In this document: one piece after another, positions 3,201 to 64,000 of the stretch
Position numbering within the stretch: the stretch's first letter is position 1
Layout: every line of letters starts with the position of its first letter
Source of the DNA: Takakia lepidozioides
Taxonomy: Eukaryota > Plantae > Bryophyta
Assembly: GCA_030704615.1 (NCBI GenBank)
Contig: CM060733.1
Coordinates: forward strand, 13,020,001-13,084,000
Direction: 5' to 3'
DNA: 64,000 bases
Made by a program: the position numbers and the translations under genes
Notes under the pieces: generated by a model
Database searches by the model: none
Told to the model about the DNA's origin: nothing
What the model saw: the letters and a program-made list of their open reading frames with translations, nothing else

Positions 3201-4790
3201 CTCCGCGGCCCACTCCTTTGCTATTAGCAGGTTTATTCGTCCTCCCACTCGGTTGGGCGTTTTCGACACCCGTAAAACTTTGCCACCATTCCCACAGGGT
3301 AGCGTGACTATTCTCTTGCAGCCATCTATGACCGCTCCGGATTTGCTCAAAAAGGTCATTCCCAAAATGAGATCCACTCCATCGATCTCGCAAATGGTGA
3401 AGTTCTCACGTCCCTCCCAACTCCTGAGCTGAAGAGGGACATCGAACGCCAACCTTGTCACCAGTTATGGTTCTCCTTTGGCATAACACACTTCAATAGA
3501 GGCCCCCACATCACTTGTCGGGAGCCCTGGCTTCCGTGCCGTTGCCGGTGTCATGAAAGAGTGCAACGCTCATGTGTCCACCAACAACGACACGTTAGTT
3601 CCGGAAATTATACCACTCACGAACATTAATTGACTCATTTTACGCAAGGGGCTAGTCTCCTGATACAACTCACAAGAGTAGTTGCCTACCTTGCAAGTCT
3701 TGGTGACTACCACCTCCACCAAGCGGCTGATGGAATCTTTGGACAGCTCCGTGGTCGCCCGAGTCATGTTCAATTGTCGGGGTTTCACGCACTTCTTGGC
3801 CATGTGCCCGGGTTCCCCGCAATTAAAGCACACTCCATCGAAGGTCGTCTTCTGTCCGCCATAAGCCGCCGCACCTGATTTTCCTTTCGGAGCACCAAGT
3901 GCCGCTTTGACGTGTGAAGGCCCTCCCTTCGATTTCCATGTGCGGGCCTTCTTGTGGTTCAGCTCCATACGGCCTTGTTTTTTGCCCCTAGGGACATCCG
4001 AGAAACATTCAGCCCTTTCAATTGTCTCGTTCAAAGTCTTAGGTGGCTTCTTCTCCAACTTCCGCCAGGTCCATGGGGCCAGTCTCGCCACAAAGTTGAA
4101 GACCATTTCTGGTTCCACCATATCCGCGATTTCGAGCAACGGCACATTGAAAGCCTGAACATATCCCCAAATGTCATCCGTTTGCTTCAAATTCCTCATC
4201 TTGTCCCGGGCGAGCCAAGACGCGTTGATGGGCACAAACTGTCTTTTCATAAGTTCCTTGAACCCATTCCAGCTCAAGGTTTCTGGGTTTGGACCTTGGT
4301 CATGAAGGCGTTTATGCCACCATTATTGAGCATAGCCCCTCAAATAGGTGGGAGCCACTTCCACCCGATCCTCGTCACTCAACTTGACCGCCCGGAAGTA
4401 CTGCTCCAGCTCCAAGAGCTAGGTATTGAGTGTCTTTCGATTTCGGACACCCTCGAAGGTGCCGGGTTCCTTAGGCTTTACCTTAAACTTTGCCTTAGTG
4501 GAAGTGGCATTAGCCGCCCTTATACATCTTTCAACGTCCCGCCAAACTGCGCCAACAACCCTTCCCAAAAGGCTGTTGGCATGGGAGACATCTGCTGGTC
4601 TAGTGGAGCTTCTGGGAAGTCCTCGGGCTCCGGCTCCCCAAATTCCTCCCGTTCTTGAGCGGCCTCGCTTTCAAAAGCATAAATCGCCTCTTTCAATTGC
4701 CGCTTCGGTGACACGTCACCCCCACTGGGCTCACCAGGATCATATCTTTCGGCCGTTCCGCTTTCACTTTGTCTTGCCCGACCCCATGAT
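288..4790 (-). pseudogene. gag-pol polyprotein of the chromovirus, disrupted
   Basis: ORF-track fragments 3570-4277 (gag), 3117-3461 (PR region), 1824-3092 (RT/RNase H), 1194-1646 and 783-1121 (IN), 516-719 (GPF), plus a chromodomain read by hand. Split by premature stops. Confidence 0.9.
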
Positions 4791-4828
4791 GAGGCCGATC
4801 TCAAGGACGATCGCGTACTGAACTCTAA

Positions 4829-4840
4829 GCTCTGATACCA
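4829..4840 (-). promoter_or_regulatory. Primer-binding site complementary to initiator tRNA-Met
   Basis: Reverse complement reads TGGTATCAGAGC, directly after the LTR. Confidence 0.9.
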
Positions 4841-5540
4841 CTTCGGTAAACTCACCTTCACGTCATAGCTACTCGCTTTGATGTACGTCCCTAACTCCCA
4901 AACTGGCCGTCGGGCCAACTCGGAGCTTCGGCTGCTCACCGGGACATAACGGTCCCCCTTTGCTCCTCCACAAGACCCTCGCTCACTTTGGGCCTAGTGG
5001 AAATTCCCTTTGGTTGTTGGCAGTCCGGAACAACTCCCCACACCTTCGTCGCTTTCCGGCTCGCACGCTTACTCAGTAGTTTTTGCTCACCAACGGGCTT
5101 GCACCGTTCTCGGGGTTACTACTCCCTATATATACTTCTGTGACTGTCCACGGGGGTTTCACAAACAACACCGTCCTTTTATGGCGAACCACCACAAAGA
5201 CCCTTGACTCCCGGTGATGAGTCGCGGTGAGTCTTGGCCCACCCACCACGGCCCCAATGGACCGTGATGAGTCCCATCGACTCCCACCATAAGGTCTCCG
5301 CCCCATGGTGAGTCTTATGCCACCCCACTAAGACCCACTAAGCTACCACCACCCCTCGTGGAACCACCCCACCGAAACCCGGTGTGCGGGGCTCCACGTG
5401 GTGAGCGCCTCCGCCTCATTGAGTGCCTTGGGCACTCAAGGGTGCTTCAGCCCCCGTACCTGTTGTTGCCACTGCCCCCACCACAGGGGCAGCCCCTCTT
5501 GTGTCCTGACCCCCTGCCCTCAAGGCAAAGGGCCGCGACA
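4841..5540 (-). repeat. 5' LTR of the chromovirus (~700 bp)
   Basis: Begins TGTCGCGGCCC on the minus strand at 5540, abuts the PBS, and is co-linear with the solo LTR at 10773-11499. Confidence 0.9.
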
Positions 5541-15087: not shown

Positions 15088-18000
15088 TCAGAAGTTCAAA
15101 CCGAGTCTCTGTAATCCATGTAGTATTGATGCACAAGTAAATTCCTCTGTAGTCACAATGTTGGGCCCCTGAGACTGTGCCACATCAGCCTTTTGGTAAT
15201 TCCTGCTGCCGCGTAGTTTCTCCTCAGACCCACCTTCCACAGCGTGTTTCAGGATTATAGTTTTATGTGTACCTGAGATCATCTCTTCATAATCGGTGTC
15301 CCCTGTCTCACCCATAATCACATACATATTGGCAACATCTAGTCCCCACCGAACAAAGAAGTACCTACGCCCAAAACCCACAACATCTGAGCATCTCCCA
15401 TCAAGACAAATTTGAACCCATCCTCTTTTATACTGATCTGCAATGTTCAGAAAGGTACTAATCCAAAAAATCTTGTACCAGTAAGTTACATTACTATATG
15501 ACAGTGTTCCCCTCAGGTTATGAACACAGCCAAAACGGATTGGAATGTGGTTATAGTTCAGGGGCAAGGCAACCTATTGAAATTTCTGCTTCCAGAGGAA
15601 CATATGAACATCTACAAAGAACCTCCCTCTCTGTTGTGCTTTTTGTTCGTTTGCAAATGTCCTGCAAGCCCTTTGAAATTCCTTGCATAGTATGTTCCAG
15701 GTAAAGTGCTTCTATGGTTCTCTCTCTCTCTCAATCGCCACAAGGCTCCGGCAAACAACGTCTAATGAGTACATTCTCTCTCTTTACAAAGCTCCATTTC
15801 TATCGAGAAACATTCTTGGTTCTCCGAGATGATAGAATCTTGCGGCCCAATTACCTTTCGGCAGCTTTATCTCCTTCTCTCCTGAGGGCATTGGGGAGGT
15901 TCAGGGTGGGCTCCCACAACCCACGGATAGAGACTGGCAGATGGGAAAACCTGCAGCGGGAGGACCGCCTATTGCACAGGGCGCAACCAGGAAATTGAAA
16001 CTGAAGAACACTTCTTCTATTGCCTTCTATATTATGAGATCTGTGGGAGATTCCACTGAGATTCCGTGGAACCCACACTGAAGTCTTTCACTATGAAGAT
16101 CAGAAATTCCTGGCAGCTTACCTGCATGAGGCACTCACCTTTAGAAATCACTCAAACAATAGTTTTTATCTCTGGCTCTGGTTTTTGTGTCCTCTCTCAT
16201 GTTTTCTTCCATTTTGTCCCATAAGCTCTATGAGCTTCCCACGGACGTTATAAAGCACCATTTCATTTCATTTCTCTTTCTTGTTTCTTTCTTTCTCTTG
16301 TCCGATAATCTCTTTGAGCTTTCCACTGAAGTACCATGTCATTTCATTTCCTCTCTGGGATGCAGCTCACACTTCAGATAGTGATCACGCCATGAACTTT
16401 CCAGATCAACAGGTTTGTGTGTTTTCTCTCTCAATATGTTGGATCAAACCCAAACAATGCAAGTACCTGAGGGCCTGTGCTCTTGAAGCCAACAAGGGCA
16501 GCACATGTAGTCTAGTTGCATTCTGGCAATATATTACATGGCACCGCAGCCCCCTCATCCGCAACCGCTGCCTTAGTTCATCAACAGGTGGAGCCTGCCC
16601 CATCCATACCAATACTCCACTGCCAATTACTCTCCTTAGACAGCAGCAAGCCCTACGTTGAGCTTCACTACTACCAGCACAATTTAGGTTTCCTGCTTGT
16701 TTGGAAGCCGTCTGCTTAAGAGTGTGAGAGACACAAGAAGAAAAATTCACTACAGGAGCACAACGTGAAGAGTTAAGAAAAAGCAAAGAAGAAATGAAAT
16801 GAACCTTCGGAAAGGAAAGGAAAAGAAAGGACGTTCTAATATCCAGTGATTTTCAGAGAGTTTATGGAGTCCATGAACTCAAAAAGCTTATGGCAGAGAG
16901 CTCAGATGTTTAACCCGAAACATGGGAACATTTACTTCTGCTTAGGGAAAAATTGGCACATGTCAGGAGAGAGTTTAGTGACATACGACAGACAGGTTGG
17001 TGACGTTGTATGCAAGGCAATGGGAGTTGCACCGGTTGTCCTCTTCCACTAAAGGACATTCTCCTTGCCTCTGCGATGCTTGTCCATCAGGTGACATCAA
17101 CCGGGGCATAGTCGTACGAAGACCTTCATAGGCCCAACGATAATCAATGTGGGATTCATAGTCAAGGTCCAAAATCAAAGTAGCTTCGGACACACATTTA
17201 GTATCCTCGCTATTCTGAGCAACTCCAGTGTAATAGAGCTCGCTGCCACTCCCACAAATTAGGGCATCGAATTCCTGAAGAGAAATCCCATTCATATTGA
17301 ACATTGACAATGTCTCCAACACACTCAGGGCAGTAGAGATGGCAAAAGCAGTCGACTGAGCACCGGACTCCCTTACAGCCTTGATAAGATCTTGAAAGAT
17401 CCTGAAAAGACCCTTACTGGGTTTCCCAGTTCGGGTATCATAGCTATCAACTGCAAACACCACCAGACTTTTCATCCTCTTCAATATCGGCACTTTGGGT
17501 TGTGGATTTCCACTACTGTGTGCCACCCCAGGATGTCCACCATGTTGAATGCACTCATTCTGGACATGGTTATTCAGTGCCTCCATCACATGCTCCATGT
17601 TTGTCTTCTGTCCACTGACGAAGTCAATGTTTTCGAAAACTTTCTCCACATTGGTTTGCTTGGTGGAAGACCCTCCGGTCAGCTTCTCTCCATCGACAGA
17701 AAGATGAAGAGAGATGTCATTAACATCACGCAGGGAATCTTCCTGAGACTTAATATCCAACTCTCCTCCATTTACTGTTGTCTGTTTCATCCAATGTGGG
17801 TGTCGCATCCGACACAATTTAATGCGGGAAAGGTAAGTGAGGCAGTGCTGAGGCCATGAGTAGAGGTGAATATTCTTCAACCCATTTCTTCGGCACTCAT
17901 TCCAGAGGATGCGGTCAGATACCAGCTTCAATAAAGCCTCTCCGATGGCTTTATGGTCATGTGGGTCGACCAGGACTCCATTGTTCAGGGCCTGCATCCT

Positions 18001-21000
18001 CATTACCAAGTTGCTTCGAGAGAGGAAGAAATGAAATGGGAAAAAAAGGAACTTTATAATGTCCCTGGGAACCTCACAGAGATTATGGGACAGAGGAAAG
18101 CATGACACGAACAAAAAGAAGTGGGGGCCCCACCATGCAGCCTAAAAACTACAATGATATTTCTAGAGAATCTCTAAGGTGGATAGCCTCATTTTGATAT
18201 GCTATCTCCGATCCCAAAATGAAACACCCTGCCAGACACTTGGGGTCCTCAAAACTGAAAGCTTATGCCACAGATTTGAGTTTCCCTAAGCAAAATTGGG
18301 ATTGGCTGTCTCTAAACAGGTGGCAGTAATGTTCCCAGATTCCATAGTAGAGAGAGGAAAAAGAAAGAAAAACTTTTTAATATTCAGAGGGCCGATGGCC
18401 AATGGGACAAGTAGAACAGGAAGAAACCACTTAAGGAAACATCAACAATCCCCAAAGACAAAGTGCCTCATGCAGGTAGAGGGAATGGGGTAGAGTTGAG
18501 GGACATACTACAATCAACATACACCAATAGGCATAATCAATTCTATCATCAGTTGCATTAATCAAACAATGGTCCTATCCCAGTAGAAGACTTCACAAAA
18601 ATGGTGGGAAGAAGGTACCCTATGAATATCAACAGGGCCTCCATTCTTTGTTGCCACCATTGGCAACCCATGCGCTGCAGCCTGCACTACAGCATGATGT
18701 CAGCCGAGAAATCTTCCTATCTAATACTAGATGTTACTTCAGCCTCACTAGCTCAATCCTGGTTTGTCTTGATTTGCTTCTGACTACCATCACATCAATG
18801 TTCTCTTTCCTTCTGGATTCAATAAGTTTCCTCCCAGTACCTCAATTAATGTGAGACCAAATGGTTCCACCAGAGCTGGGTTGATAAACACTCCCTGCAA
18901 GTTCCAAACATGATAGTTTTGAGCAGCTGTTAGATCAAAATCATCTGATACACAAAGATCATCTGACCATTCATGAAAACAGAGTCTCTGTTTCCCGGAA
19001 AGCATGATCTGACATTTTCGCTGAGAGCCCAACAGTGTGATGACAGTGTCAATTGGATGGTTAACATGTACTAGTGTCCTGTTTTGACTTAGAGGGAGTC
19101 CCGTGACGAGCAAGTACAGACAAGACAAGCAACCAATCCCATCCAACAACTTCCACCCCTTGATGAGCCCCCAGATTGAATTTACTACTAAAAACCATCA
19201 GCTGCAAAGTCTACACATAGCAAGAGTGACGACCTTGTACCTACACAGAGGTTGATATGACTACCAGACTACTATGTCCCAACAACATAATATCTATTTC
19301 ATCTAGTTCATTCCTCTGCCCAGATCATATTAATTTGTAACAAAAAATTTGACTAGAAAAAACCACGTACCTTCGTTTTAGCTGCAAGCCCGTAAATATC
19401 AGGCACATCACATTGCTTGTGGTGCTTGGGATAGGCCACTTGACCATAAAGGTCGTATTTGTCGATCAATTTCAGTGCTGTCATGAGTACCGCTCCACTG
19501 CCTCCAGACATGTCATCTATGTCATCTCTGTTCCCCATTATTAATGTCTGCAATCAAACCACCACAGCTTTGAGTTCCATTTTGATACAGAAGTTCACTG
19601 TAAGAATTCCAACTGAACTGTGTGGGAGAGAAGAAGAAGAAGCAGAAACATGATATGGAGAGAAAGCAAGAAACTTTATGATGTCCATGAAAGCTCAAAG
19701 TGCTCCTGTTCCACCCCAATATTACTATGCACTTCTGCAGAGAAATTCCCTGCAAAAGAGGCAGTAGTAGCGGCCACGGATTTTGCGGACAGTGAAAGAA
19801 GAAATGTTCCCACAGTCTCCATCTCTTGTCTGTCTTCTCCCTGCGCTGTCGAATGGTCATGCGGGCTTGGACTGGTAGCCACCTAGAGAAGGAACTTCAT
19901 AATGTCCACTGGAAGCTCAAAGAGCTTACGGGATAAAGGAATAGAGAGGGCTGGGGGTAAGGGAAAGAGGGAGTTACCAGATTGGCTAATTCACGCAGTG
20001 GACGGCACTCTCCAAATGCCCTCAACAAAGTGGTGATGTTCTTCTTTGGGTCTGGACGCGCCAGTGCCAATAACATGGGCTTGTGTGGGTTACTGAAAAA
20101 ACGCATTATCTGTTCTTCCCCATCCCAGCAGAGCACACAAATACACCCATTAAATTGCTGAGCGCTGATCTCTGTTGTACCTTAATGGCCACAAGGCTAC
20201 GGCAAACAACGTCTTATGAGTACAATCTGTTGTACCTCATCTTACAGAACATTTATGCCTACTAACACAATTTTTTGCATATCTTTGTCTAATGCTGCAT
20301 TTTTCTTCAAAGAATTGAAGGAGAGTCAGCAGGGCTCGAAAGCAAGGTTCCCTTCCACCCTTGTCTCTTTCTTCATAGAGTTTCTCTCTTTTTTTCTCTC
20401 TCACAAGAATTACTGCCATCCTCAAGATGCCATGGCTAGAACCAGGCTGCTGGACAAATACCTCATCCCAAATGGGCGGATTTGCAGAAGGTAATATAGG
20501 TGAAAGCGCAGTACCATCTGGGCCTGTGTCTAGATCACCTTCTAGAATATCGCCTGCATCTTGGTCCACCATGTTGCTGAAATCCATACCAGGAGGTATC
20601 ACCTACAACCACAACGGTGCATTCTATCATGCTGCATGATACCTCTTCCATGCATATAATCTTCCAATATCTGTTAAGTTTTTTGGCTTTTCAACATTAC
20701 TTTCTGCCTGCTCATCTGCCATTGCTGCAGCGAGAGAAATGAAATGGTACATTATAACGTCCGCGGAAAGCTCAAGACAGAGAGAGACAGAGAGAGTGGG
20801 AAGGGCCACTGACCACCATGCTAGGCATATAGCGGCCATGGGAGCTCACACAACGTCGTGCACGTGCCCTAAGTACCTTCTCCATCTTTACATCAAATCC
20901 ATCATATAAACCCCATTGCTGTTCAATCTCCTGCTTGGTACTTGTTATCACTAACTCTGCAGCATCCAATGCGAGCTCTTCAGCCTCAATACGCCGCATA

Positions 21001-24000
21001 ATTTTGTATGTTGAATTAATGTCCTCCGACTGTCGTCCCTGAACGAGTAACTGTTCCAGCTTGCTTCGACCAAGGGAATGGCCAGTGATAACCATGGGAA
21101 CGTTCAGGGCACCAGATAGTAGTGCTGCAATGTCACCAGCATCAGCATAGTGCCCATGAATCACATGGGGCCATATGAGCTCCCCACCAGAAATTTGTTC
21201 ACCCAGTGCTTTGGCCATATTGAGGATGTGTGCCAGTGCCCCATCAACAAACTCCTGGACATAGGGCCATAAAAGCTCCTTGCGAATGTATTGGTCCCTG
21301 TAAAATCTAGTACTGGTGAAAAATGATACAGAGAAAGAATGTCCTGATAAGACGTCGTTTGCTGTAGCCTTGTCCCACTACTGGAGTGAGCCTCTCACAA
21401 AGGTGGTGTATGTTCCCTCTTATTCCACCCAATCTGAGCGCACGGGGTCTATGGCCACCGCAGTACAAACAATTAGTGCGGGCTTTCCAGATTTCCTCAT
21501 AGAAATCCCTTCACACAAGCATCAATCTGCTGTGTGAGAGACCCCACGGCCAGGGCTTTAGGCTCAGCCTCGAGATTTTGAAAGTCTTCAGGCCATCCAC
21601 ACATAAGTGATTGATAATCTCCTTTTTCTCTCTTAATCAAAGTCAAAGTAGAACTACAACACCACCACTCTAAAGACTCCATACATTGCCTGGAGGAGGG
21701 CACACGGAGACACTGGGGAGAACCAGGGGAACCATGCACGTAGCCTGATTTTGTTGAGCTCATGCCCAGAATGGAAGAGACACTTCTGGATGACAAGTGA
21801 CTATACTTCAAGGAGAGGAGGGTTAGCATGACTAAGGATTACTGCTAGCATACCTGGGTCCGCAGGGGATGCGCACGATATATGCACCACTGCTTTCTCC
21901 AACTTCTTGATTGTCCTCACAGGGTCCAGATGTCAACATTTCAGTTGGTTCCCCATAGCTACAATCCACAACTGGGGAACAAATTTGTCGGGTCAAGAGA
22001 TCTACACGGTACACTTCCGGCATCATAGCCAATGCCCTTGCAAACTCCACCACATACTTCACCTGCCTCACCTCAGATTGTTACACAATGGTCAGTTTAA
22101 AGTGATAAGGAGGAGTAGTGACACTGAAGCTAAGAAAGTCCAGTCCCCTGGTTGTCTGAGTGCCATACTGTCTCACACTTCTTTCCTGGAGAAACTCACA
22201 AATTGCATCATTAAACCTTGAAACTTGGAAAGGACCATTGAGATGAAGGTATATATGTAGGCAAAAGGAGATACAACCAGAGTATCAAGTTTATCTTTTA
22301 AGGATTGAAGTAGGCTGCCATACAAGGGAATGAGAAATAATTAAATAGCAGTTCAACGTTATTACAAAGTTTAAATTATCAACCAGTTGGCATGCACTGG
22401 ACTTCAAATTCTTGTCCACAAGGCTATCAAGCAGGAAGATGTTTGTCTTGAGTAACCTGTCCACCAGTGTCTGAATCTCGGCCAAGCTCCATATTATCAC
22501 CACGCACAAGGCCATGCAAGCTGCAATCACACACTCAGACTAAAACACACTGTCCGTCCCTCGTGGTTTATAAGTAAAGAAGGGAATCTGAGTTTTGTTA
22601 GGAGAGCCCCCTTTCATGCTCCTTTGGCCAGAATCTGGATCAAAGGTTTGAGAATGTGTGAGTACTCTAACGACAGCACAAAGTCTACTGACATTGCCAA
22701 TTTGACCAATATTTTAAAAACTCACGTTGTCAATGCGATGCGAAATGCTGGTAGGTATTGACATTTTGCGGACTCACAAACAACATAATCCCTCTGACCT
22801 CTTTCCCCGTCCAAGAAACAGGGCCAGAATGTGATCAAAAGTCCACGTTGATGACAACTTAGTCAAAATGCCCTTTTACAGGCCATTAACAATCTACAAT
22901 TTGTCAAAAGGCGTAATCCTTCCATTTCATTTACCCTTTCTATGCAACAGGGTAGGAGAATTTTTTGCTGCCAGCCAGTCTCGTTGCATCCTTCTTCTTG
23001 GACAACCAATGAATAGAGTGGAAGAGAAAAAAGTTTCAAGTCATGAAACGCAAAGGTTTTATACCAGTGTAGCCCGCAGTTAGTTCTAGCATAAAACTTC
23101 GAAGTTGCAGCAGAGGACTCAAATTCCCCAATATATGGGCCTTGATGAAATATCGTCAACTTGATGGCATTTTCTTGCCTTTACAACATAAATAGAACCT
23201 CCCAGGTTCAACAACCACATAAAAGAACCTTAGTCAGAAAATACCTTATCAAAACAACATATAAATGCCGCTTCTTGGGTTGCTCTTTTGGGCCATCAGA
23301 TGCTTGGCTAACTGAAATAGCATTACTGCTATCCAATGGGGGTCCATCAAAAAAGTGGTCAGGTTTCTCCCCCTCTGACAACTCTTCAGACATGTCCTCT
23401 GTGGCATATTTGCGTCCTTGATCTCTCTCCATATGCCGCTGTGCCAGCTGCTTGGCATCCTCCCATGCAATCTGCATACAGGAAATTTAGTCTACATTAT
23501 TCCCTAAGGATGTATGTAGCCCATTGCTCCTATCAGCTCTGAGAAGATGAACTATCATCAAAATGTCCCAATTGCAAATGTGTGGATATGTCCACATCGG
23601 TCAGTAAAAGCTGAGTAAAAGCTGTCCCTGGACAAAGTTGCCAATCAATCATCCCCAGCATATGCTTTCCTGACAAGCAGCTATAGTGTTACTGCCCTTG
23701 GAGGCAAGTGTACCTCTAGCTCACGCCTAGCTATAGAACACAGGTGCAACTGACTATATTCTAACAAAACAAAAACCTGTAGTCATAATCATGTAAACCC
23801 TTATCCCTCTGCACCTCTACAGAAGTACAAACATCCGTCCTCACATAACCTGGCTCTCAGGATGCTCCAAGGCTGCGCAACCTTGGATGTGATATCTCAC
23901 TGGCATTTAGTCTATCTCCAGGAATCTGAAGTTTGTCCAGCAAACCAAAGTGTACACTGCATAATCCAAACTGCTCTGGTCTCTCTCTCACTAGTAGAGA

Positions 24001-46165: not shown

Positions 46166-46428
46166 TTGTAATTTGAAAATGTAAATGTACATGTAATAGA
46201 TTAAAAAAATAACGTAGATCTAAATGTAGGCCATGTATGTAACATTCAGCTCAATATGACATAATAAATTGAGCAGTGCGGTGTCTATCCCCACACTTTC
46301 GTTTTGGCCAGCCATATACCATCCCAAACTTTTGTAAATATATGAGTTTTGCACAATTATTAAATGCCTTTTGGATTCTTTGTTTGCATTGTTTTTACAC
46401 AGGAGTTGTTCCACAAGCTTTTTATGTC

Positions 46429-48768
46429 ATGGAGCCCAATATTTTCGATGAACTAGAAAGGGAAGTTGTTCCTGACAGCAATGTTGATAATGAGAGAGCT
46501 TTGTTGGAGTGCCATGTTGCGGAGGATGCTCATCATGAAGCCTCATTTACATCAGCTCATCAAGCCTCGGCTGCAATGTCATCTTCCACAGTTTCGCCAC
46601 CACACACGGTGTTGGATGTGGAGGCGCAGCTCCTAGTACTTGAAAAACAACGGGATTTTTGGAAGCCCCACAATCGCACTGCTTCGACATGGGCATTCTA
46701 TGCAACAAAAGACTCTGCTCCAGTGGACATATCAAATCCACAACAAATGAGGTGTGTTCTATGTCATCCTGTTGGTGTCACTCTTGCAAGCAAGAAGGGC
46801 ATTGTGACCTATAATAAAACCAATGGTATCTCTGCCCTTCGAAAGCATGTGGATCAAGAACATGACATTGTTTTGCGTAGGTGGATTGAGAGGGAAAATG
46901 AAGGACCTGAGAAGGCCCGTAGGCCAGCAAAAAAGAGGCCTGGCCCCACTCCTGGAAACATAGCTTCTTTTTTTGGGAGCTCCACTCCATACAACCAAAA
47001 TGATGATCAACAGAAGCAGTTCAATGAGGATTTAGTCTTATTCATTGCAAAGGAGTTGGTTCCACTGTCTTTGGTAGAATCCCCTTGGCTAAGAAGGATG
47101 GTGTTGAGGCAAAATCCTCGGATTGTTTTCCCTTCTCGACGGACATTTGTGAATGAGGCCATTCCAATCTTGGCAGAGAGGACGAAAGAGCGTTACATGT
47201 CCCCATCTCTTCAGAGTTGTGCTACTTGCTCCGTGAGTTTTGATTTGTGGATGTCAAGAGGGGGAACTGACACTTTTGTCATCATAGCGCACTTTATTAA
47301 TGAACAGTGGGAGCAATGTCATGTGACTCTTGGCATGTTTGAGACACCTCACACATCTGGGGCTGCCATGGCACATCAAGTCAACAATCTTCTTGTGAAG
47401 TATGGCCTCAATACTCGCATTATTACTTACGTCAAAGATGAGGGAGGTAACTTGGTCACTTTGACCAATGCTTTGAATTCGGTGGTCTCATGTGCGTGTT
47501 TGGGGTTGGATTCTCCATTTGTGGGTAGCTGTTTTAGGCATGCAATGTCCAAGTGTTGCCAGTATGCAACAAATGATGCAAAAGTATGCGCAGATATGAG
47601 ATCGGTTTCTATAAAAAATGCCCAATCAGAGTTGCAAAAAACCATTACTTGGACCAAAAAAAGTGGCAAAGGGAGACAAGAATGGGCAAAGGCATGTGTG
47701 GACAACGGCATTCATCCCTGCAAACTGAAGACTCCGGTGAAGACACGGTTTGCTTCCAAGGTGATCCTCTTCCAAGAGACTTTGGAGTTTAGGCAAGCCA
47801 TAATCACTTGTTACTGTAGGCAAACCTCATTGGCACTGCAGTCTCGCATACCAAGTCCACAAGTGTGGGCCATTGCCCAATCAATTTCTACAGTTCTAGG
47901 GCTGTGGTTCATGAGTGCATTATGAATCAATCTGGGGGATTTTGGTTGTTGTCCGATGCTCTTAATGCAGCCATTGCCACAACAATTCGCATGCGAGGAA
48001 GTAGTGCTGGGGGGGCTGCAACTGTGGATCATTGCATGGGGGATTTCTCAACAGAGTTGACATTGTTGGAATGGCGGATGGCTCGAGAGGTGGTATATGT
48101 CTTGGAACCATTTCTTTCTTTTTTGGAAGGGTTTCAATCGCGCAAAGCTCACAATATGCTCGCGCTTATGCTTGACCCACGTTACAAGGGGTTGTCATTG
48201 GTATCACAATATGTGGGCAAAGAGCGTGCTTTGCATATTGTGTCCCAATATGATAGTATGGTGTTAGAGCCTCTTTTGGTAAAGTGTTTCAAGGTCTTAC
48301 ATCCGGATACTCCGGCCCAATCACAGCCCACTTCTACAATAGACGAGATGTCCTTATTTGGTGTGCATGACCACAATGAAGACATGACATTGACAGTGGT
48401 GAGAGAACAACTATCACATTTCAGAAGGACGAAGATAAATGAGGGTGAGTGCGTGGCTCCTTTGAAATGGTGGAAAGAACACGAGTCTCTCTTTCCGTAT
48501 GTGGGATTTTTGGCACGGCTAATTTTGGGCATCTCACATTGAAGCTGAGAGGGTTTTTAGTATTGCAGGTGTCATAACAAACTTGAGACGGTGCAGGTTA
48601 AATATTGAAAACCTTGATATCCTTGTGAGTGTAGTCAAGAATTGGCCAAATGATGCTAGAGTTGGTTGCTTTAGTACTTCCATGAAAGAGTTTTTGGATA
48701 GGGAATAAGTCCTCTTAGATGAGAATGAGGACTTGATTGCAGAGGCAAACCTCTTTGAGGTAGACTGA
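46429..48768 (+). pseudogene. hAT transposase (BED finger, DDE, dimerisation domain), frameshifted
   Basis: W.F..CVLC..LRKHVDQEH (zf-BED), SFDLW, YVKDEGGN, CFRH, KTRF, LDPRYK, PLKWWK..FP..LAR, ERVFS.AG. Frame breaks at ~47900 and ~48535, stop at ~48706. Confidence 0.92.
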
Positions 48769-53168: not shown

Positions 53169-53891
53169 ATGGCTAACATGGATTTGTCCTTATCATCTCT
53201 GAACGAGATTAACAAACTTGATGGGGCCAATAACTATACTCTGTGGAAATTCAAGATTCAAACAATCTTGGAAAGGGATGAGATATGGGACCTCGTTGAG
53301 TCTTCTGAGAAGGGGAAGCATAAAGTCGACGTTGTAGGTGTTACAAATCCCAGCGAGTGTTGGGAGCTTTTGAAGAGACTTTATGGCACAAAGAACAATG
53401 CTAAGAGGTTGTACGTCAGGAACAAGTTCTCACAGTTGAAAATGGAAGACAACTAGCCTTCCATCATTCGAAGAACTTATCGGGTGTTTGCAGCTAGAAG
53501 AAACGCGATTCCTGAACCAACCCAAAGTACGGCGTGAAGAAGAAGCTTTGGTCGTCAAATTCAGGAACCTCCTGAATCGACGAGCAAATATTCAGGCCAG
53601 CAACTATGGGAGATGAACATGTCATAAGTGTGTCAAGGTGGGTCACTATTGGCGTCAATGTCCGGGCAGAGCAACATTCCCTAGACGTGAAAGTCTCGCA
53701 CAAGCACATGCAGCTGAAGTCAAGATTCCCGATAGTGTAGTTGAGCTGTTTGATGAAGCAGTGTCTACACTTGTTGCTGAGATCAAAGAGGAGCTCTGGT
53801 TTCTCGACACCGGGGCTATCAAACATGTCACCGGCAACCCTGATCTCTTAGAACAGATCAAACCTTCGGAAGAATCTCTGAATGACAGTAT
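53169..53891 (+). mobile_element. Ty1/copia gag-protease relic, interrupted by the CACTA insertion
   Basis: KLDGANNYTLWKFKIQTIL, W..LKRLY, CHKC..VGHYWRQC knuckle, WFLDTGAIKHVTG. Confidence 0.85.
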
Positions 53892-54244
53892 CACTACAGG
53901 AAAAGGGGGGGGGGGGTTCCGACGCCTACCCCACCATGGCACCTCTCCCGTGCGGCGCTTGGGCGTTGCAAAATATTGCCAAAATCTAATTTATGTGGAT
54001 TTTGGCCCAAGTCCTTTATTGCGACGCCTGAGGCGTCGCAATGGACATTTTTTTTTAAAAAAAATGTCGTAGCCTAGCGCCGCATCAAGCAAAAAAAAAA
54101 AAAAAAAAAAACGTCGCATTTTTAATGCGACGCCCTGTGCGTCGCATAAGCACCCCATGAGAGGAAAAAATAAAATAATAAATAATAAATAAAATAAAAT
54201 AATGAAAAAAAACCAAAAAAAGATCGCATTTTGAATGCGACGCC

Positions 54245-55200
54245 TGTAATGGCTAGATTCCCTCTACCTACCTTTTTGACATTTGGATGGACAGACACTG
54301 AATGATGACCGTTGGAAAGGGTTTGGATGAAACCAGCTAGAAACAATCTATTCTTAAACTAAGTATTGTCTTATATTAACAGCTAGTTTATCTCTAAAAT
54401 GGAATGAGGTGGCGTCCTATCTAGACATACACCCGGATGGAATCCAAATAACCAATCAGGGCTTGCCACTTGGTTAGATGAGATTGTGGGCCTTCGTTTA
54501 TAAAAGAGATCAGCACGACGCTTAAGGCGGCAGTGTACGTTTGGTGTGTAAACCCTAGTGTACTTGTGTGAGAGATTTGGATGAAGAAGGTGTGAGTGAG
54601 GATGTGCTGCTAACCCATGTGAATGATTCTGACTCCTCTCCGTTGGATCCTGCCTATCTCGCTAGCCTGCTTTACCGAGCACACATCCCCGTGATAGCTC
54701 AATACCCGTAGAGGAAGAGGAATAACGGGGTGGGCAAGAATCTTGGTGGAGAAGGGGTTGCAGGATTTCGTTAATCATTAGCTGCACATTCATTCCTTGT
54801 ACGTCAGGTAGTTGTACACTGACACTGTTGCCATGGCGACGCTCTACTGTTTCAGTTCTCGTTCATGTTTTTGCTTGCTCCTGGCTTTCATAGTATCTGC
54901 TTGCGTTTCTGTAACCTGTGGCAATGGCCTCCTCTTCTAATCCTCCAACTGACGCTGAGCTTAGCGCGTACAAAGAAACTCCCGCTGGTCATTTTGAGTC
55001 GATTTTTGCCAGCTTCGTGCATGTTGCGGTTGATCCTAGCCTAGTGGTTGAAGTTGATTATCCGCCTCTTGGCTTTGGTGCTTAGCCCCGAGCAAACAGT
55101 TAGTCCTGTACTACACATCCCGCCACATTAGCAAAAACAAAAAGTTGTCATGTGCATGGCTCATAATGCCATCTACCCCACTACGGTGCACAAGACTGTC
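54245..55200 (+). mobile_element. Probable LTR-retroelement fragment nested in the CACTA left arm
   Basis: Abrupt switch from GCGACG repeats to TGTAATGGC..., a TATAAA box at ~54500, a possible CA end at ~54806, then a short ORF start MASSSNPP. No PBS or TSD recognised. Confidence 0.35.
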
Positions 55201-55204
55201 GTCG

Positions 55205-56202
55205 AAACTTCCATGAACTTGTTTCCAGTCTATGATATGGGGGAGGAGATCTTGGATGACCTCAAGGGTCTACCCACTCTCGGCACTAGACTGAAATTTA
55301 AACTCGGGGCAGGAAGCAAACAGAAGCAGAGAGGATCGGGAGAATGCAATTGCCCGTTGTGTGGGCAATCTGAAGACATTATTCATTTATGATACACTCT
55401 CCGGGGTTCTCTCACCAAAGAGACGCTCTCTTCAAATCTATCAAGGGAATTGTGTATGTACCTCTGTTTACTAACTTTGAAAAAGTCGAGGCTGAGCCAA
55501 AAGCCCAGCCCCTTCTGAGGCCTAGTTTTTGGGCAACTCACACACAGCAGATTGATGCTTGTGTGAAGGGATTTGTAGAGGATATCTGGAAAACCCGGAT
55601 TAATTCTATATGTGAATGTAAGTTTTACTACCAACGTCAGCCCCTGATAGAGGTAGGATCTGTCCCTTTTGTTTCCCCAAGAGAGGGGGCAACAAAGAAA
55701 AGAAAAAAATGTGGGGGTGGGGAGTGACTGAGCAGCTCTCTTCTGTGCTGCTCTATTTTAAGCTCCCGATGAGATAAATTCAAGGTCAGATGGTAGGTTC
55801 AGCTGCAACATATGTCCAAGACCAGATATCCTAAGTTAATCGACTCTATATCTTGGAAACAGGACCGCCCTGTCAAACAGGGTAAGCCCTGGGAGAAGAG
55901 TGTAGAAGAGATTCTCAAGGATATGAATCTGGACCCGCAAGTCTTGACCTTGCTGGATAAACCTGACTTAGAGAGTGTAGTGTCCAAAGCCATGTCTGTT
56001 ACCAGAAAATTGTCCGATGAAAATGAAGTTATGAAGAAAACTTCCTTGAACCTGTTTCCAGTGTGACATGGGGGAGGACATCATGGATGCACTCAAGGGT
56101 CTATCCCACTCTTGGCACCAGACCAAAATTTAAACTCAGGCTAGGAAGACTACATTTGAACAGTAAACAGAAGCAGAGAGGAAATGGAGAGTGCAATTGC
56201 CC
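55205..56202 (+). mobile_element. Two overlapping LINE-derived 3' fragments (RTEX-like CCHC region)
   Basis: TRLKFKL..CNCPLCGQSED.IH...[17 protein letters not shown], followed by a second piece MSKTRYPKLIDS.. Confidence 0.75.
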
Positions 56203-57309
56203 TGACGCACCTCTGCTGCTTGCTGCTGCTGCTGCTGCTTAAAGCGAGCTAGCGCGGCGAGCTGTTGCGGTGCTGTCGCGGCTGCCAACGGCGCGGGTCC
56301 TCGCCGCTGCAGGGCGTCTCTCCCCCGCTCACCATGGCCCCATCTCTCTCTTCAGCTCGTTTAGATCGCGCCTCTGCGCGGCGTTCCTACCACACAGGGG
56401 AGAGAGAGATCAGCCCGTGCTTAGGGCAAGAAAGCAAGAGAGAAAGTGAGGGACGAGGCGGTGCTTATCTTGGGCGTTGGAGCGGCGTTGGGGCAAACTC
56501 CTTGGGGCCTTGTGACCACCTTGAGCTCAGCAGCAGGTGCGTTTCTCCTCCACCCTAAACCCCACTCTCTGAACTACCTCTCTCCCAAAGACAAAACAAA
56601 AACGGGAGGGGAAAGAGGTGCTTCAAGCACTTAGGGAAAAAAAAGGGCGTGGCGCCTACGTGCGACGCCCGGCTGTCGCACGCCTGCGCCCCGCCCTTTT
56701 TTTGAAATGTAAAAATGGTATTTGCGACGGCGGGCCGTCGCTGCTTGCGACCCCCGGCCCCATGAATAAAAAAACACGTCGCCCCCCGCGACGGCTTTCC
56801 GTCTCGGGGTGCGACCCCCAGGTAAAAATTTGAAAAAAATGCGTCGTCAAATGCGACGCGAGGGTGTCGCAGGAGGCGACAGCCGGCCTTTCTGGGTTTA
56901 GGGTTTAGGGCCTTTTGGGGTTCTTAGTTTTTATTTTTATTTTTATTTTTTTTCATATGGTATTGGGTTAGGGTGTTTTCTTTTCTTTATGGTGCTGGGT
57001 TTTGGATTGGCGATTTTGGTTGTGGGTCTTGGGGTTGAAAGGATAAACGGTGTAAGTAGGATTCACATATCCAAAATGTGGTTCAATCTGATAAGCGCAA
57101 AGTGCTGGGTCTCAACAAATTTTTCCATGGTGTGGGCATCCTGAAGATAGAACGTGAGGAAGGATTTATTGTCTTGTGCTCTCTAGCACCATAGGGATGC
57201 TCCGCCTTTGGTTACCAATTTTGAAAGCCCCGAGGCTGCGGCACAAGGTTTTTTCGCCAACGGTTTTTGAGAAATGAAAGTGCTGGTGGTGTGTGTTAAT
57301 TAGGATGCG

Positions 57310-58401
57310 ATGATGAGGAAACATCAACCCGTCTCCCTCGAGGATGAGGAGGTAGTACCACATATCGATTGTGGCCCTAGAGCTACTGTTTTTCATGGTG
57401 AGGAGCCACCCATTGTACCTGATCCAATATAGGCTGCCGGGCACAATCGTAGAAGGGACAGGGGCCAAATTTCAGGTGATGCGGAGGATGTTGACACTCC
57501 GGGATCGAGTTGGGCGCGCCGCGGGTTGCCCCCTCGCGGGCCACCCTGTCCAACCACGTAACCACCTCCACTTTCATCTCCTCCGCCAGCAGTACCACCT
57601 CCACCTCCACCACCACCTCCACCTCCACGTGCATGTGCCCCCCGAACCCCTAGGAGGGGTCGGCTTCGCCCTAGGTTTCCTCCCCTTCGGCTTGGGCGGC
57701 CTGAGCCGGATCCTCGCTCCCGATGGGAAACGCATAGGACTATGTTACTGAGGACCGTCCAACCTCGTTGTTGGGGGAATCATCTCGACCCTCCCACCCT
57801 CATCCGAGAAAATGTGGAGTTCGAGTATTGGGGGAGATGGTATGTTGTGAGAGCCGCTACAGATCCTGCTATGGGTCGGGGTTTATTCACGGTCAATGAT
57901 ATTGTGGTTCCTCCTCGGAGAAACAGCATGGTGGACTTGTTTCCCTACTACGGTCCATACTACACCTCCGCGGAGTTCCGTACATTACGCCTCGAAGCCC
58001 CATACATCCTACCCTACATTATGTGTGTCAACGGACAAGATGTACGTAGATGGGGGTTGTCTCCCATTGAGATCAAATTTTGTGATGGTGACCCCGACAT
58101 CTTCGACAATGTAACTGGGCTGGTCAATAGTTCTTTTGGTCATCCTAGGATAACCAATGTAGTATAGGACGAGCGAAGCGATGGGCATAAGAACTTTTGT
58201 GGTCATACGTCAGTATACTGTGAGGGGATGCACATGTTTGTGATGACATGTGCTAGTAGGACTATTAGGGCTGGCAGCGAACTATTTGCATCATACGAGT
58301 TCTCCCGGGATGATTGGGACCTCCGATTACAGCGTGAGTGGGATGTGTATGATAGAAATAGGGTTCCTTTGAGACAGGAATCGCGTAGAGGGGCATTGTA
58401 G
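57310..58401 (+). pseudogene. Transposon-borne proline-rich plus SET-domain (lysine methyltransferase-like) gene with three in-frame stops
   Basis: Single frame from ATG 57310 to TAG 58399-58401. SET motifs MGRGLFTVNDI, PYYGPYY, DGDPDIFDNVTGLVNSS and CASRTIRAGSELFASY. Stops at 57430, 57559 and 58165; no frameshifts. Confidence 0.8.
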
Positions 58402-59393: not shown

Positions 59394-60985
59394 GGACTTT
59401 GTCCATCCCTTCCCGGTCCTTTCTCTTGGCACCCCATCCGAAAACAACCCAAGTACATCAGGCGGGAGCCGTGGGCGAGACGCCGCCCCCACGGTACCGG
59501 ACGATGATGACGATGACAGTGACAATGACAGTGACAACAACAATGAGCATAGAATCAACCAAGAGGATGTGCAAGCCATGGAGGATCTCTTAATGCATAA
59601 TGTGGGCTCTAATGCATCCATGAAGAGGGAACCCGACCAATCGATGATCCTGAAATGGCCCCCTCAAATGACATGGAGAGGGAGGCGAGAACTCCCTTGT
59701 ACAAAGGGGCGAAAGTGAGTCGACTTTCAACAATCTTACTTTTGCTCAATCTTCAAATTCGATTTGGCATAAGTAATGTTGGGATGTCTGCCATAATACG
59801 AACTATTGCAGACTATATCTTTGCTCTATACTTGAAACCCAAGATGCCACGGTCGCAGAAAGAGGCGCGCGAAGTCTTGGACTCTGTGGGGATGGGCTAT
59901 AAGATTTTTCATGCATGTCCATGTGATAAAACCCTATACTACGGAGAGTCTCACCAATTGCCCAAAGTGCAAGAAAGACCGATATCGGGATGATGTCCAA
60001 GGGGAAAAAGTATCACGCAAGGTATAAGCGCCATTCCCCCTCGCATGGAGATTACTTTCTTTAATCTTCTCAATGTATGTAAAGTGTATTCCACAAAATT
60101 TAGGGTTTAGAGAGTAGTATTCATGCAAGATCTGATTGTGGTTTTGGAAGGAGTGAGTGAGGAGTGGAAGGAGCGACGTTCGGTTTTGACCATTCACACT
60201 CAAATGAGGGAGAGGTTGCATAAAAGGAAAGACATAATGGTGTTGTATTATGTGTGCTAATGGGATGATTACATATGGGGGGCGTGGGGTATTTCATCCT
60301 AGAAAATGCATTACTTTCCGATCATCCCGCGATTGAGGGCACAGTATCGAAGCCCCGAATTGGCCAGACTCGTGAGATGGCACGCCTCGCATCGGAGCCC
60401 CCCGTGAAAGGTGTGCGGGCCACAAGATTCACAAGCATGGAGGCATATTGAAGAGATGTGGCCTTCTCTCTTGGAGGACCCACGACATGTCCACCTCGGC
60501 TTCTCCTCGGATGGGGTCAACCCATTCTCTGTCCAATCATGTAGTCATTCCACTTGGCCGGTGACCATGGTAAATTACAACATCCCTCCGTATCTTTCAA
60601 TTAAAAAAGACCATATCATGTTGGCTGCCATTGTGCCAGGTGAGTGTACTCATTTCATGTTTATTATTGCCTTAGACTTTACATTAAACTTATGATCTCT
60701 GACGCAATTCGGATGCAAGATTGATGAGTGACATAATCATGAAGTAAGACGTGTAATTCATTTAGTAGTATAATTTGCATATTGGTGGAGCATTGAAACA
60801 ATGATGTGAATGTCTCATAGGGAAAACACAAGTGGCAAACATGGACACGTACTTGCGACCTCTTGTTGATGAACTTAAGGAGCTATGGAGGGGGGTCCCG
60901 CCATTGGATGCTTCACTTGACCCTGTGGCCGGACAATCTTTTCAGATGAGAAACATCTTGCTTTGGACAATGCATGATTATCCAG
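59394..60985 (+). pseudogene. CACTA TnpD/Tnp2 (Transposase_21-like) transposase, spliced, disrupted and truncated
   Basis: ARTPLYKG, YKIFHACPCD..LYY..CPKC..DRY, intron 60022-60302, YFPIIPRL..WH..DSQAW..DPRHVHLGFSSDGVNPF..STWPV..YNIPP..IVPG, intron, MDTYLRPLVDELKELW..WTMHDYPG. Confidence 0.9.
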
Positions 60986-61084
60986 GTATATTATGTTCCC
61001 CATGAACAACCCGCGTACAATGCCGGATAATATCGATGATGATTGGGGTTTTTGCCTAACTTCATTTTCATCTACTGCTGCTCA

Positions 61085-61912
61085 GTCACTCCCCCCCCCC
61101 CCCACATTTTTTTCTTTTCTTTTCTGCCCCCTCTCTTGGGGAAACAAAAGGGACAGATCCTACCTCTATCAGGGACTGACGTTGGTAGTAAGACTTACCT
61201 TCACATATAGAATTAATCCGGGTTTTCCAGATATCCTCTACAAATCCCTTCACACAAGCATCAATCTGTTGTGTGTCAGATGCCCAAAAACTAGGCCTCA
61301 GAAGGGGCTGGGCTTTTGGCTCAGCCTCGACTTTTTCAAAGTTAGTAAATAGAGGTACATGCACAATTTCCTTGATAGATTTGAAGAGAGCATCTCTTTG
61401 GTGAGAGAACCCCGGACAGTGTATCAGAAAATGAGTATTGTCTTCAGATTGCCCACACAACGGGCAATTGCACTCTCCCTTTCCGCTCTGCTTCTGTTTG
61501 CTGTTCAAATGTAGACTTCCTGCCCGGAGTTTAAATTTCAGTCTAGTGCAGTGAGTGGGTAGTCCCTTGAGGTCATCCAAGATCTTCTCCCCCATGTCAT
61601 AGACTGGAAACAAGTTCAGGGAAGTTTTTTTGCCTAACTTCATTTTTATCAGACAATCTCATGGCAACAGACATGGTTGGACACTACAGCCTCTAAGTCA
61701 GATTTATCCAGCAGGGTGAAGACTTGCGGTTCCAGGTCTAGGTCCTTGAGAATCTCTTCTACTGTCTTCTGCCAGGACTTAGCCTGTTTGATAGGTCGGT
61801 GGGCGGTCCTGTTTCCAAGATATAGAGTCGATTAACTTAGGCTATCTGGTGTTGGACATATGCTGCAGCTGACCCCACCATCTGACCTTAAACTCATCTC
61901 GTTGGGAGCTTA
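61085..61912 (-). mobile_element. LINE-derived 3' fragment (~830 bp) inserted after the last visible TnpD exon
   Basis: LSSQRDEFKVRWWGQLQHMS..PKL; KLRAGSLHL..CNCPLCGQSEDNTHFLIHCP..R..LF; same family as 55205-56202. Confidence 0.8.
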
Positions 61913-63474
61913 AACGTCTCTTCACCATACCCTGGCCTAAGCATCTAGCTAACAAAGCCATCCGGGTTGGAACATAACAGGGGCATTTTACCAACATGGG
62001 TACCCGAGTAGCTGCAGCAAACAGTTCCTTGCAGCCTCTCAATTTGTTTCCAACTACCATAAGGTAAGCAAAGCAAACTAGGGCCTGGAAAACAGATGTG
62101 TGTCTCTCACACAAGCCATCATAAACCCGGCTGTCACAACAAAGCAAAGGTTTTCCATTGGCTGGGCCATAGCCCATTGTAGAAAACATTACACTTGTTC
62201 TTCATAAATAAAGGAAGGAGAGAGGTAGGATCAAGAAAAACCATAGAGTAGTTGAGTTTTTCAACATTTTAAGATGAGTCCCTGGCAAGCAATTCCTTCC
62301 CCGGCTCTGCAATCCCACTTGGCATCTAGCAGCACCTAGACATCAGTATATCAAGTGGAAGCCCTCACCTGTGCCCGTCCCAAAAACAACCACAACGCAT
62401 TGTGAGTTAGTGAGGATGCACGAGGTGAATAGCAGGCTTCCACACTTGCTATCGAGGTCACATACACTTGAATCTAAGCGCAAAGAATGCCAAAGAAAGC
62501 AGGGAAGCAAGACAAACAATTTTTTATTTTATTTTTTACTGTTTGGGGGAGAATCGCCATCTCTCCACAAGCCTAACCGGCAGGGAGGTCTCTGCCAGCA
62601 CCACAACACTGCTACCTTAACCAAAACAAAGTCTTGCCAAGCATAAGAAAAAAGAGCTTGGTCTCAAAAGGTGGGGTTTATAAAGGGAGGGAGAGAGAGA
62701 CTTCCTTGTTCTACCAAGACGCCGCCATTCATCAAAGATCCAGAGGAGGGCTCCTAGGGAAACGTCATAAGTAGGCAGGTGGTACCTCCGCCATGCCGTG
62801 GTTCCCTTGTGCAGCAAAAAAACAGACAAATGAGACAGTGAATCTTCCCTCATCTCTAAGCCACCGCCACCGCCTTAAAGAGCCCGCATAGGCGGCACTC
62901 ATAGGAGCCATAACTACTCAAGGATTGGCAGCTCAAGGTATCTGCAGCACGAGCACCATCGCGCGCACTCTCGCAACGCAAAAAAAAGACATTAGGGTTG
63001 CGCAGGGTTTTCCCCTGTCTGGCCCATCATTCATCATTCTTAGGATGAAAAACATCCGCCAGTCTGTTCGCCCGACGGACGTTATCCGTTTTCCATTCGC
63101 GGAAGATGAAAAATGTCGTGCGTTCATCCTGTCTTGAACTGGACGGATGCAGTCCGCTTTTCATCTAGTTTAGATGAAAAACATCGGGGTAAAAAATCTT
63201 TGTGTAGACCTGTCTTGTCCCGTATTTTAGGTCCTGACAGATGAAATCTTTTTTTCATCCAGGTTGGATTGAAAAACTAAACACTGACGGGCGTTTTGCA
63301 CTCAGTATATTCCGGGTTGGTGTCCGGATGAAGCAAAAAACCTCACAGGTATTAGTGAAGAAAAGTTTTACTAGGGAAAAAAATGTATTATGAATGAAAA
63401 ACATCTAAAATTCCATGCAACCCAATTTTTTCAATTTTTTCAAAAATGGAAGTCGGGACAACAATTCCATAAAC

Positions 63475-63700
63475 CCAGTTTCCAGAGGGAGAGAGAGGGA
63501 GAGAGAGGGACAGAGAGAGGGAGTGAGAGTGAGAGATCAGGAAACGAAAAATAAAATAAAATAAAAAAATTGGGGGGGGGAGTGACTGAGCAGCTGTCCT
63601 CAGTAGCTGCAGCTGCAAGGTCACTCCCCCCCCCCCTCCCACATTTTTTTTTTCTTTGTTGCCCCCTCTCTCCCTTTGTCTCCCTCTCTACTGGGAATTG
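63475..63700. repeat. Inverted duplication of the LINE-derived tail, with (GA)n microsatellite
   Basis: GGGGAGTGACTGAGCAGC at ~63575 faces GTCACTCCCCC...ACATTTTTTT at ~63620; the same tail occurs at 55710-55737 and 61078-61140. Confidence 0.6.
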
Positions 63701-64000
63701 GCAGTTTGCTATCAGTGTTGACTTCTTGTTTTCTCATCCTCTATCGGATTAATTCTATATATGAAGGTAAGTCCTACTACCAGAGGTTGTAGAGGTTGTA
63801 GAGGTTGTTTCCTAATGAGGCTAACTTGTGGGTTTGCATGACAGGTGCCAGCTTATGGGGAAAGAGAAGAAGTCCCCTGCCCCAAAGAAAGGGGCGGACA
63901 ATCCGTTTGCTCTGCCGGCACGTGTGATGTGCCAGGGCGTCTCACGGTTAACCAGCCCTATTGACAGCCGCAGCCGGAGGGCTCGTCTGCCCCCCGAGGC

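Follow-up and report, generated by a model that had tools for sequence, protein, structure and literature searches.

In the moss Takakia lepidozioides, the 64-kb stretch of contig CM060733.1 analysed here (the window, 64,000 nucleotides, whose own coordinates are used throughout) carries a degraded CACTA transposon in which a divergent SET domain precedes the transposase TnpD. Profile searches, fold comparison and the loci of relatives indicate that the domain at 57727-58314 is a real SET domain, that it belongs to a family-wide CACTA gene of seed-free land plants and is not a chance capture, and that in relatives it forms a terminal exon within a stretch that would otherwise be the first intron of TnpD. 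The window copy itself is, as its sequence reads, a dead pseudogene, unable to make a full SET domain. The element is laid out as follows:

53892 to 53904, + strand: left-end terminal inverted repeat (TIR) of the CACTA element, inside a Copia pol frame
53920 to 54244, unstranded: subterminal GCGACG/CGTCGC palindromes, first block, recognized by motif clustering
54245 to 56202, unstranded: foreign insertions within the element, namely a putative LTR-like stretch starting with TG and a zf-RVT-like repeat at 55205-56202
56638 to 56882, unstranded: second block of GCGACG/CGTCGC subterminal repeats, recognized by motif clustering
57310 to 57726, + strand: Pro/Arg-rich linker frame with a putative start and two stops, at 57430 and 57559
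57727 to 58314, + strand: SET domain core, broken by the TAG at 58165-58167
58315 to 58401, + strand: short C-terminal tail and stop, with post-SET cysteines absent
59395 to 61060, + strand: TnpD transposase remnant, with a phase-0 acceptor at 59395, an acidic linker and Transposase_21 pieces

The stop-free pieces of the window were searched separately, and the read-through protein was analysed with X at the stops. Taken by itself, the 141-residue window piece drew blanks in Pfam, in a word-indexed homologue search, in a PDB sequence search and in the ESM Atlas. An exhaustive phmmer search with 57742-58164 recovered 39 relatives at 28-43% identity, and 23 of 33 homologues match Pfam SET (PF00856; best 6.5e-9), with no other Pfam domain detected in them; Pfam support for the SET identity proposed in the first-pass annotation thus comes from the homologues and not from the window pieces. 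A profile built from the 39 homologues spans the third stop in its match to 57727-58314 (E 3e-49) and matches nothing elsewhere in the window, while the piece beyond that stop matches the family on its own (hhalign probability 96.7, E 3e-10). Furthermore, the model of one homologue, P0013 (pLDDT 91.5), has a SET fold (VIA Z up to 12.3; Foldseek to SET8, E 7e-7), which together with the profile and the Pfam matches bears the proposed identity out. The model of the truncated 141-residue window piece is weaker, and SETs rank best for it but below significance (Z 4.0 or less).

The affinities of the domain within the SET superfamily are loose. The P0013 model matches SET8, SET1, EZH2, SET7/9 and LegAS4 at VIA Z 11-12, with the top hits tied, and the structural hits show no preference among SET1, EZH2, SET8 and SET7/9 as the closest histone methyltransferase family. 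PDB sequence matches to EZH2, MLL and ATXR5 all have E > 0.01, the best PDB sequence match being a weak one to Legionella LegAS4 (E 3e-5), and the family shows neither the flanking domains and cysteines nor a clear sequence affinity that would link it to one of the host plant classes SUVH, ATX, ASHH, E(z) and ATXR5/6. The absence of a post-SET cysteine cluster, first remarked on in the window, extends to the 39 relatives (0/39 have one). Among the ESM Atlas clusters next nearest to P0013 by features are haptophyte-rich SET families (score 0.95-0.96), a possible lead as to origin.

Translation of 57310-58401 on the + strand yields, as originally described, a frame with in-frame stops at 57430 (TAG), 57559 (TAA) and 58165 (TAG) and no frameshifts. 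The accompanying argument, that each stop lies one transition from a sense codon, is weightless because it applies to every stop codon; the sole informative stop is the third, since it is located in a Trp/Phe column of the family. Apart from this interruption, the core keeps the GxG, YxG, second Tyr, DG, N-S-S and GxEL...Y motifs, and the Arg/Pro-rich N-terminal tail noted earlier is recognizable as the Pro/Arg-rich linker, with an Arg-rich patch. The linker frame contains a candidate phase-0 donor at 57352 and a candidate acceptor ending at 57432, and the first stop (57430) may in truth be a splice acceptor. The candidate introns 57352-57432 and 57398-57475 were not accepted, because they are shorter and more GC-rich than those of relatives (111-174 nt, 27-36% GC). 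In a quick version of the family tree, the position of the window copy, which lies on a long branch, is unsure.

The surrounding element can be recognized from both sides of the SET frame. The sequence CACTACAGGAAAA at 53892 occurs as a single exact copy within the window, and a Copia pol frame is interrupted precisely there, its Pol_BBD match stopping at the same point; since the frame is cut exactly at 53892, this position is taken as a real insertion junction. Of the GCGACG/CGTCGC-type motifs, 15 fall in 53892-54250 and 13 more in 56620-56890, compared with 27 over the remaining ~63 kb, and this clustering, together with the Copia junction, sustains the left terminus and subterminal repeats of the first-pass annotation. 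Downstream of the SET frame and on the same strand, the expected TnpD is confirmed by a Transposase_21 match at 60411-60692 (Pfam, E 1e-25). The remnant is broken by stops and a frameshift, is 40-45% identical to the TnpD of relatives, and is truncated near 61.07 kb by the inverted copy, at 61077-61914, of the zf-RVT-like repeat. The right TIR is absent from the 64-kb window, and we infer continuity between the left TIR and the SET frame across the ~2-kb foreign insertion (54245-56200).

Several features of this region are worth recording in their own right. The Copia gag/pol remnant at 53169-53891 ends at the CACTA terminus, which gives the order of insertion. The putative LTR-like stretch at 54245-55085 has a TG start, a TATA-like box and a PBS-like TGGCGAC near 54835, followed by a short frame, and returned no match in a Pfam search. 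The zf-RVT-like repeat family is represented at 55205-56202 and 61077-61914 and by pieces at 21471-21585 and 63553-63782, with copies 85-96% identical; the inverted pair, 5.4 kb apart, represents two insertions in one CACTA element that flank the SET-TnpD block. A GC-rich stretch at 56200-56620, which separates the insertions from the second subterminal block, resembles a promoter or an untranslated first exon.

Named relatives of the SET domain come from the liverworts Riccia sorocarpa, with many paralogues, and Calypogeia fissa, from Sphagnum species, of which one cluster comprises 360 sequences, and from the fern Ceratopteris richardii, with no seed-plant member among them; a search of bacterial genomes and viral contigs found no relative with the family motifs. 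In 9/9 independent long loci (L001-L007, L022 and L023, from Riccia, Sphagnum, Ceratopteris and metagenomes), TnpD lies 0.2-1 kb downstream of SET on the same strand, and the Ceratopteris locus L023 (5758-19236) is a bounded 13.5-kb element whose TIRs match at 13/14 bases and whose target-site duplication reads TAT/TAT. In the sole pair with unsaturated synonymous sites, two Riccia paralogues, dN/dS is 0.21, far from the value near 1 of a neutral passenger; the remaining copy pairs, at 35-56% protein identity, have saturated synonymous sites. In the corresponding TnpD comparison, the rows of the window copy were set aside as out of frame.

These observations bear upon the possibility that the SET frame is a passive, Pack-CACTA-type capture of a host SET fragment with no role for the element. 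The state of the window copy, a pseudogene on a long branch, would be in keeping with such a capture, but the domain occupies the same position in liverwort, moss and fern elements, has a single-exon core and evolves under purifying selection, and none of the loci fetched is a non-transposon locus. The family is thus not recent, partial, confined to one family or neutral, as Pack-CACTA fragments are. Because of the 9/9 linkage to TnpD, the bounded Ceratopteris element and the dN/dS of 0.21, passive capture is rejected as very improbable, and the early suggestion of a dedicated accessory gene, which the multi-copy nature of the family also favours, is upheld. The identity matrices of SET and TnpD are correlated (rho 0.70, p 0.008), but co-evolution is not claimed, because a single close pair, along with the divergent copy in the window, accounts for the correlation. 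In the annotations and ORF lists of the fetched loci no TnpA-like gene appears, the window copy being truncated.

The arrangement of these loci also revises the view of the SET frame as an intronless, stand-alone gene. A CxCxxC...H zinc-ribbon motif lies upstream of the SET core in 10+ loci; among loci with enough flank, L018-L020 alone are without it. Of the corresponding peptides, 7/10 match Transpos_assoc (PF13963) weakly (E 1e-4 to 0.1). Transpos_assoc is the usual N-terminus of TnpD. In seven loci the motif exon ends in a phase-0 donor, followed by an AT-rich intron of the length and composition given above, a phase-0 acceptor and the SET frame, while TnpD exon 2 starts at a phase-0 acceptor in L003, L005 and L006, as the window TnpD does at 59395; in one relative (L021) the motif reads through to SET with no intron. 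Since the SET exon sits inside the first TnpD intron, one promoter could give either a zinc ribbon-SET or a zinc ribbon-transposase protein, and from these genomic signals we infer alternative splicing to SET or to TnpD. The first exon escaped detection when the window was scanned by HMM and by a frameshift-aware method (score 16.5, against a null mean of 17.4 and controls of 38-55), and a RIYC-like stretch near 57160 was rejected as a candidate, its score being that of background.

We give an even chance to an overall scheme in which a zinc ribbon-SET methyltransferase, produced by intact elements through alternative splicing, acts on the chromatin of their own copies so that they stay expressible. 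On this view the window holds the defunct remains of an element from a CACTA (En/Spm) lineage in which a single transcription unit of each autonomous member encodes two proteins: if the SET exon is included, by splicing or by read-through, the product would be a zinc ribbon, a basic Pro/Arg linker and a minimal SET, and if it is skipped, the transposase. The SET would methylate histone tails on copies of its own element, to which it could be brought by the shared zinc ribbon or by the transposase, and this methylation would keep the element expressible or mobile; SET would then have the accessory function that in the CACTAs of flowering plants is served by TnpA. The fuller proposal, that an undescribed old land-plant CACTA lineage splices its zinc-ribbon exon onto its own histone methyltransferase and uses this enzyme to mark its own copies protectively, is put forward tentatively, at below even confidence; that such a SET would then be the catalytic counterpart of TnpA and VANC in seed-free plants is an equally tentative part of it.

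The same architecture could serve self-limitation, either through a repressive mark (H3K27- or H3K9-like) laid on the element's own copies or through a SET exon that diverts splicing away from the transposase. The structure makes the two products mutually exclusive, and both activation and repression are possible for Spm TnpA. Bryophyte PRC2, moreover, represses transposons (10.1101/2022.10.24.513474). Splice diversion alone, however, would leave the catalytic residues unkept, and the transposon chromatin factors so far described (VANC, and the proposals for TET/JBP) counter silencing, which makes self-limitation quite unlikely in our estimation.

A protective mark presupposes catalysis, and we consider it probable, from residue conservation, that the SET of intact elements is an active SAM-dependent lysine methyltransferase, likely able to add more than one methyl group. 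The change from NHS to NSS, first thought a possible sign of lost catalysis, turns out to be the family norm, with Ser in 56, Asn in 4 and His in 0 of 60 homologues, and active LegAS4 likewise lacks this His, having Phe in its place. The residue two before the terminal, catalytic Tyr is small, not Tyr or Phe. According to the Phe/Tyr-switch rule, a small residue there would permit multiple methylation. LegAS4 is an active H3K14 methyltransferase, and the changes in its dead allele include Y135, Y159, N181 and Y220 (10.64898/2026.05.29.728679); these residues align with conserved columns of the family and are retained in the window copy. Intact copies are probably active because the catalytic Tyr and Asn are kept.

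An inactive SET acting as a reader, decoy or scaffold, in the manner of SUVH9 and many PR domains, could instead mask a histone tail or guide insertion. The family-wide lack of the motif His would accord with this, as would the replacement of the motif Asn by Gln in 8/61 and of the YxG Tyr by Phe in 19/61 and the absence of a post-SET cap. Yet the family, at 30-45% identity, conserves GxG (59/60 homologues), the Asn, the second Tyr and the terminal Tyr (45/48), and LegAS4 is active although it lacks the motif His; an inactive role is therefore regarded as unlikely.

Of similarly low probability is an active methyltransferase with a non-histone target, be it the TnpD of the element itself or a silencing factor of the host, that would tune transposition. 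SET7/9 is among the tied top fold hits, minimal SETs such as SET7/9 act mostly on non-histone proteins, and the common first exon could recruit SET to TnpD. Against this, the basic linker suits nucleosome engagement, and the best PDB sequence match, weak as it is, is to a histone H3 methyltransferase. An Arg-rich or basic patch lies ahead of the SET core in 18/31 relatives as well as in the window copy, and in RomA a basic patch mediates nucleosome binding (10.64898/2026.05.29.728679). LegAS4/RomA, SET8 and SET7/9 share with the present family the fold, the catalytic Tyr and Asn and the absence of pre- and post-SET zinc clusters; the family differs from them in having 15-28% identity to them and no ankyrins, and a shared substrate is not implied.

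Transposon-borne SET domains are already known from HarbingerS, oomycete MuDR and red-algal Plavaka elements. The red-algal Plavaka transposons, members of the EnSpm/CACTA superfamily, carry a long-conserved SET accessory, PAG2 (bioRxiv 10.1101/2025.02.11.637652). Compared by architecture, PAG2 is a fusion of an N6-adenine methylase and a SET domain within a three-gene cassette with PAG1 and PAG3, whereas the present family has a lone minimal SET within a canonical TnpD (Transposase_21) gene with a common first exon; its homologues carry SET alone and have TnpD exons as neighbours, which sets them apart from PAG2. SET cargo has likewise been described in Phytophthora HarbingerS and MuDR families and in SET-capturing Helitrons (PMC12730594; bioRxiv 10.1101/2025.02.11.637652), which belong to other superfamilies and hosts and in which, as far as these sources describe them, SET is a separate gene.

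In maize En/Spm (TnpA/TnpD) and in Arabidopsis EN/SPM3 and 7 (PMC13547354), transposase and accessory protein also arise from one unit by alternative splicing. The present accessory differs from TnpA, to which it is unrelated, in being a predicted enzyme and in its upstream location inside the first intron of TnpD; TnpA-like domains are reported in flowering plants only (PMC13547354). The likeness to VANC of VANDAL Mutators lies in the proposed action of an element-encoded factor on its own chromatin, VANC being a protein that binds specific DNA sequences, has demonstrated activity and lacks a SET domain.

A literature search, with Repbase Reports and subscription papers outside its scope, yielded no description of a SET domain in canonical land-plant CACTAs, nor of one sharing the first exon of a transposase, and the literature searched revealed no transposon-encoded histone methyltransferase with demonstrated action on the element encoding it. 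The distribution described above suggests that plant CACTAs have swapped their accessory gene in evolution, this gene being SET in seed-free and TnpA in flowering plants. It also carries a warning that many bryophyte and fern gene models named 'SET domain-containing protein' are transposon genes. Although other members suit further work on the family better than the window copy does, intact frames exist in Sphagnum, Riccia and Ceratopteris, which are sequenced and partly tractable, so that the idea is directly testable.

Some further observations concern the loci of relatives and the rest of the window. The Ceratopteris element in L023 is missing the N-terminal region of TnpD and contains several kb of microsatellite padding. 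In L001, an Ulp1-like Peptidase_C48 gene at 16473-19574 (- strand) lies near the Riccia SET-CACTA element and is possibly further cargo, and in L018-L020 (near 1803, 1150 and 1101, respectively) a CACTA terminus splits the SET core of the relative P0012, representing a nested CACTA insertion. Elsewhere in the window, 1194-4939 (- strand) holds gag, RT-RNaseH and integrase pieces of a Ty3/Gypsy retrotransposon, and exons judged by eye to resemble a plant sucrose-phosphate synthase gene lie at approximately 16975-21218 (- strand). A further CACTA end may be represented by CACTACTGGAAAG at 44008, and frames of a hAT-type transposase, with a weak Dimer_Tnp_hAT match, lie at 46276-48542.
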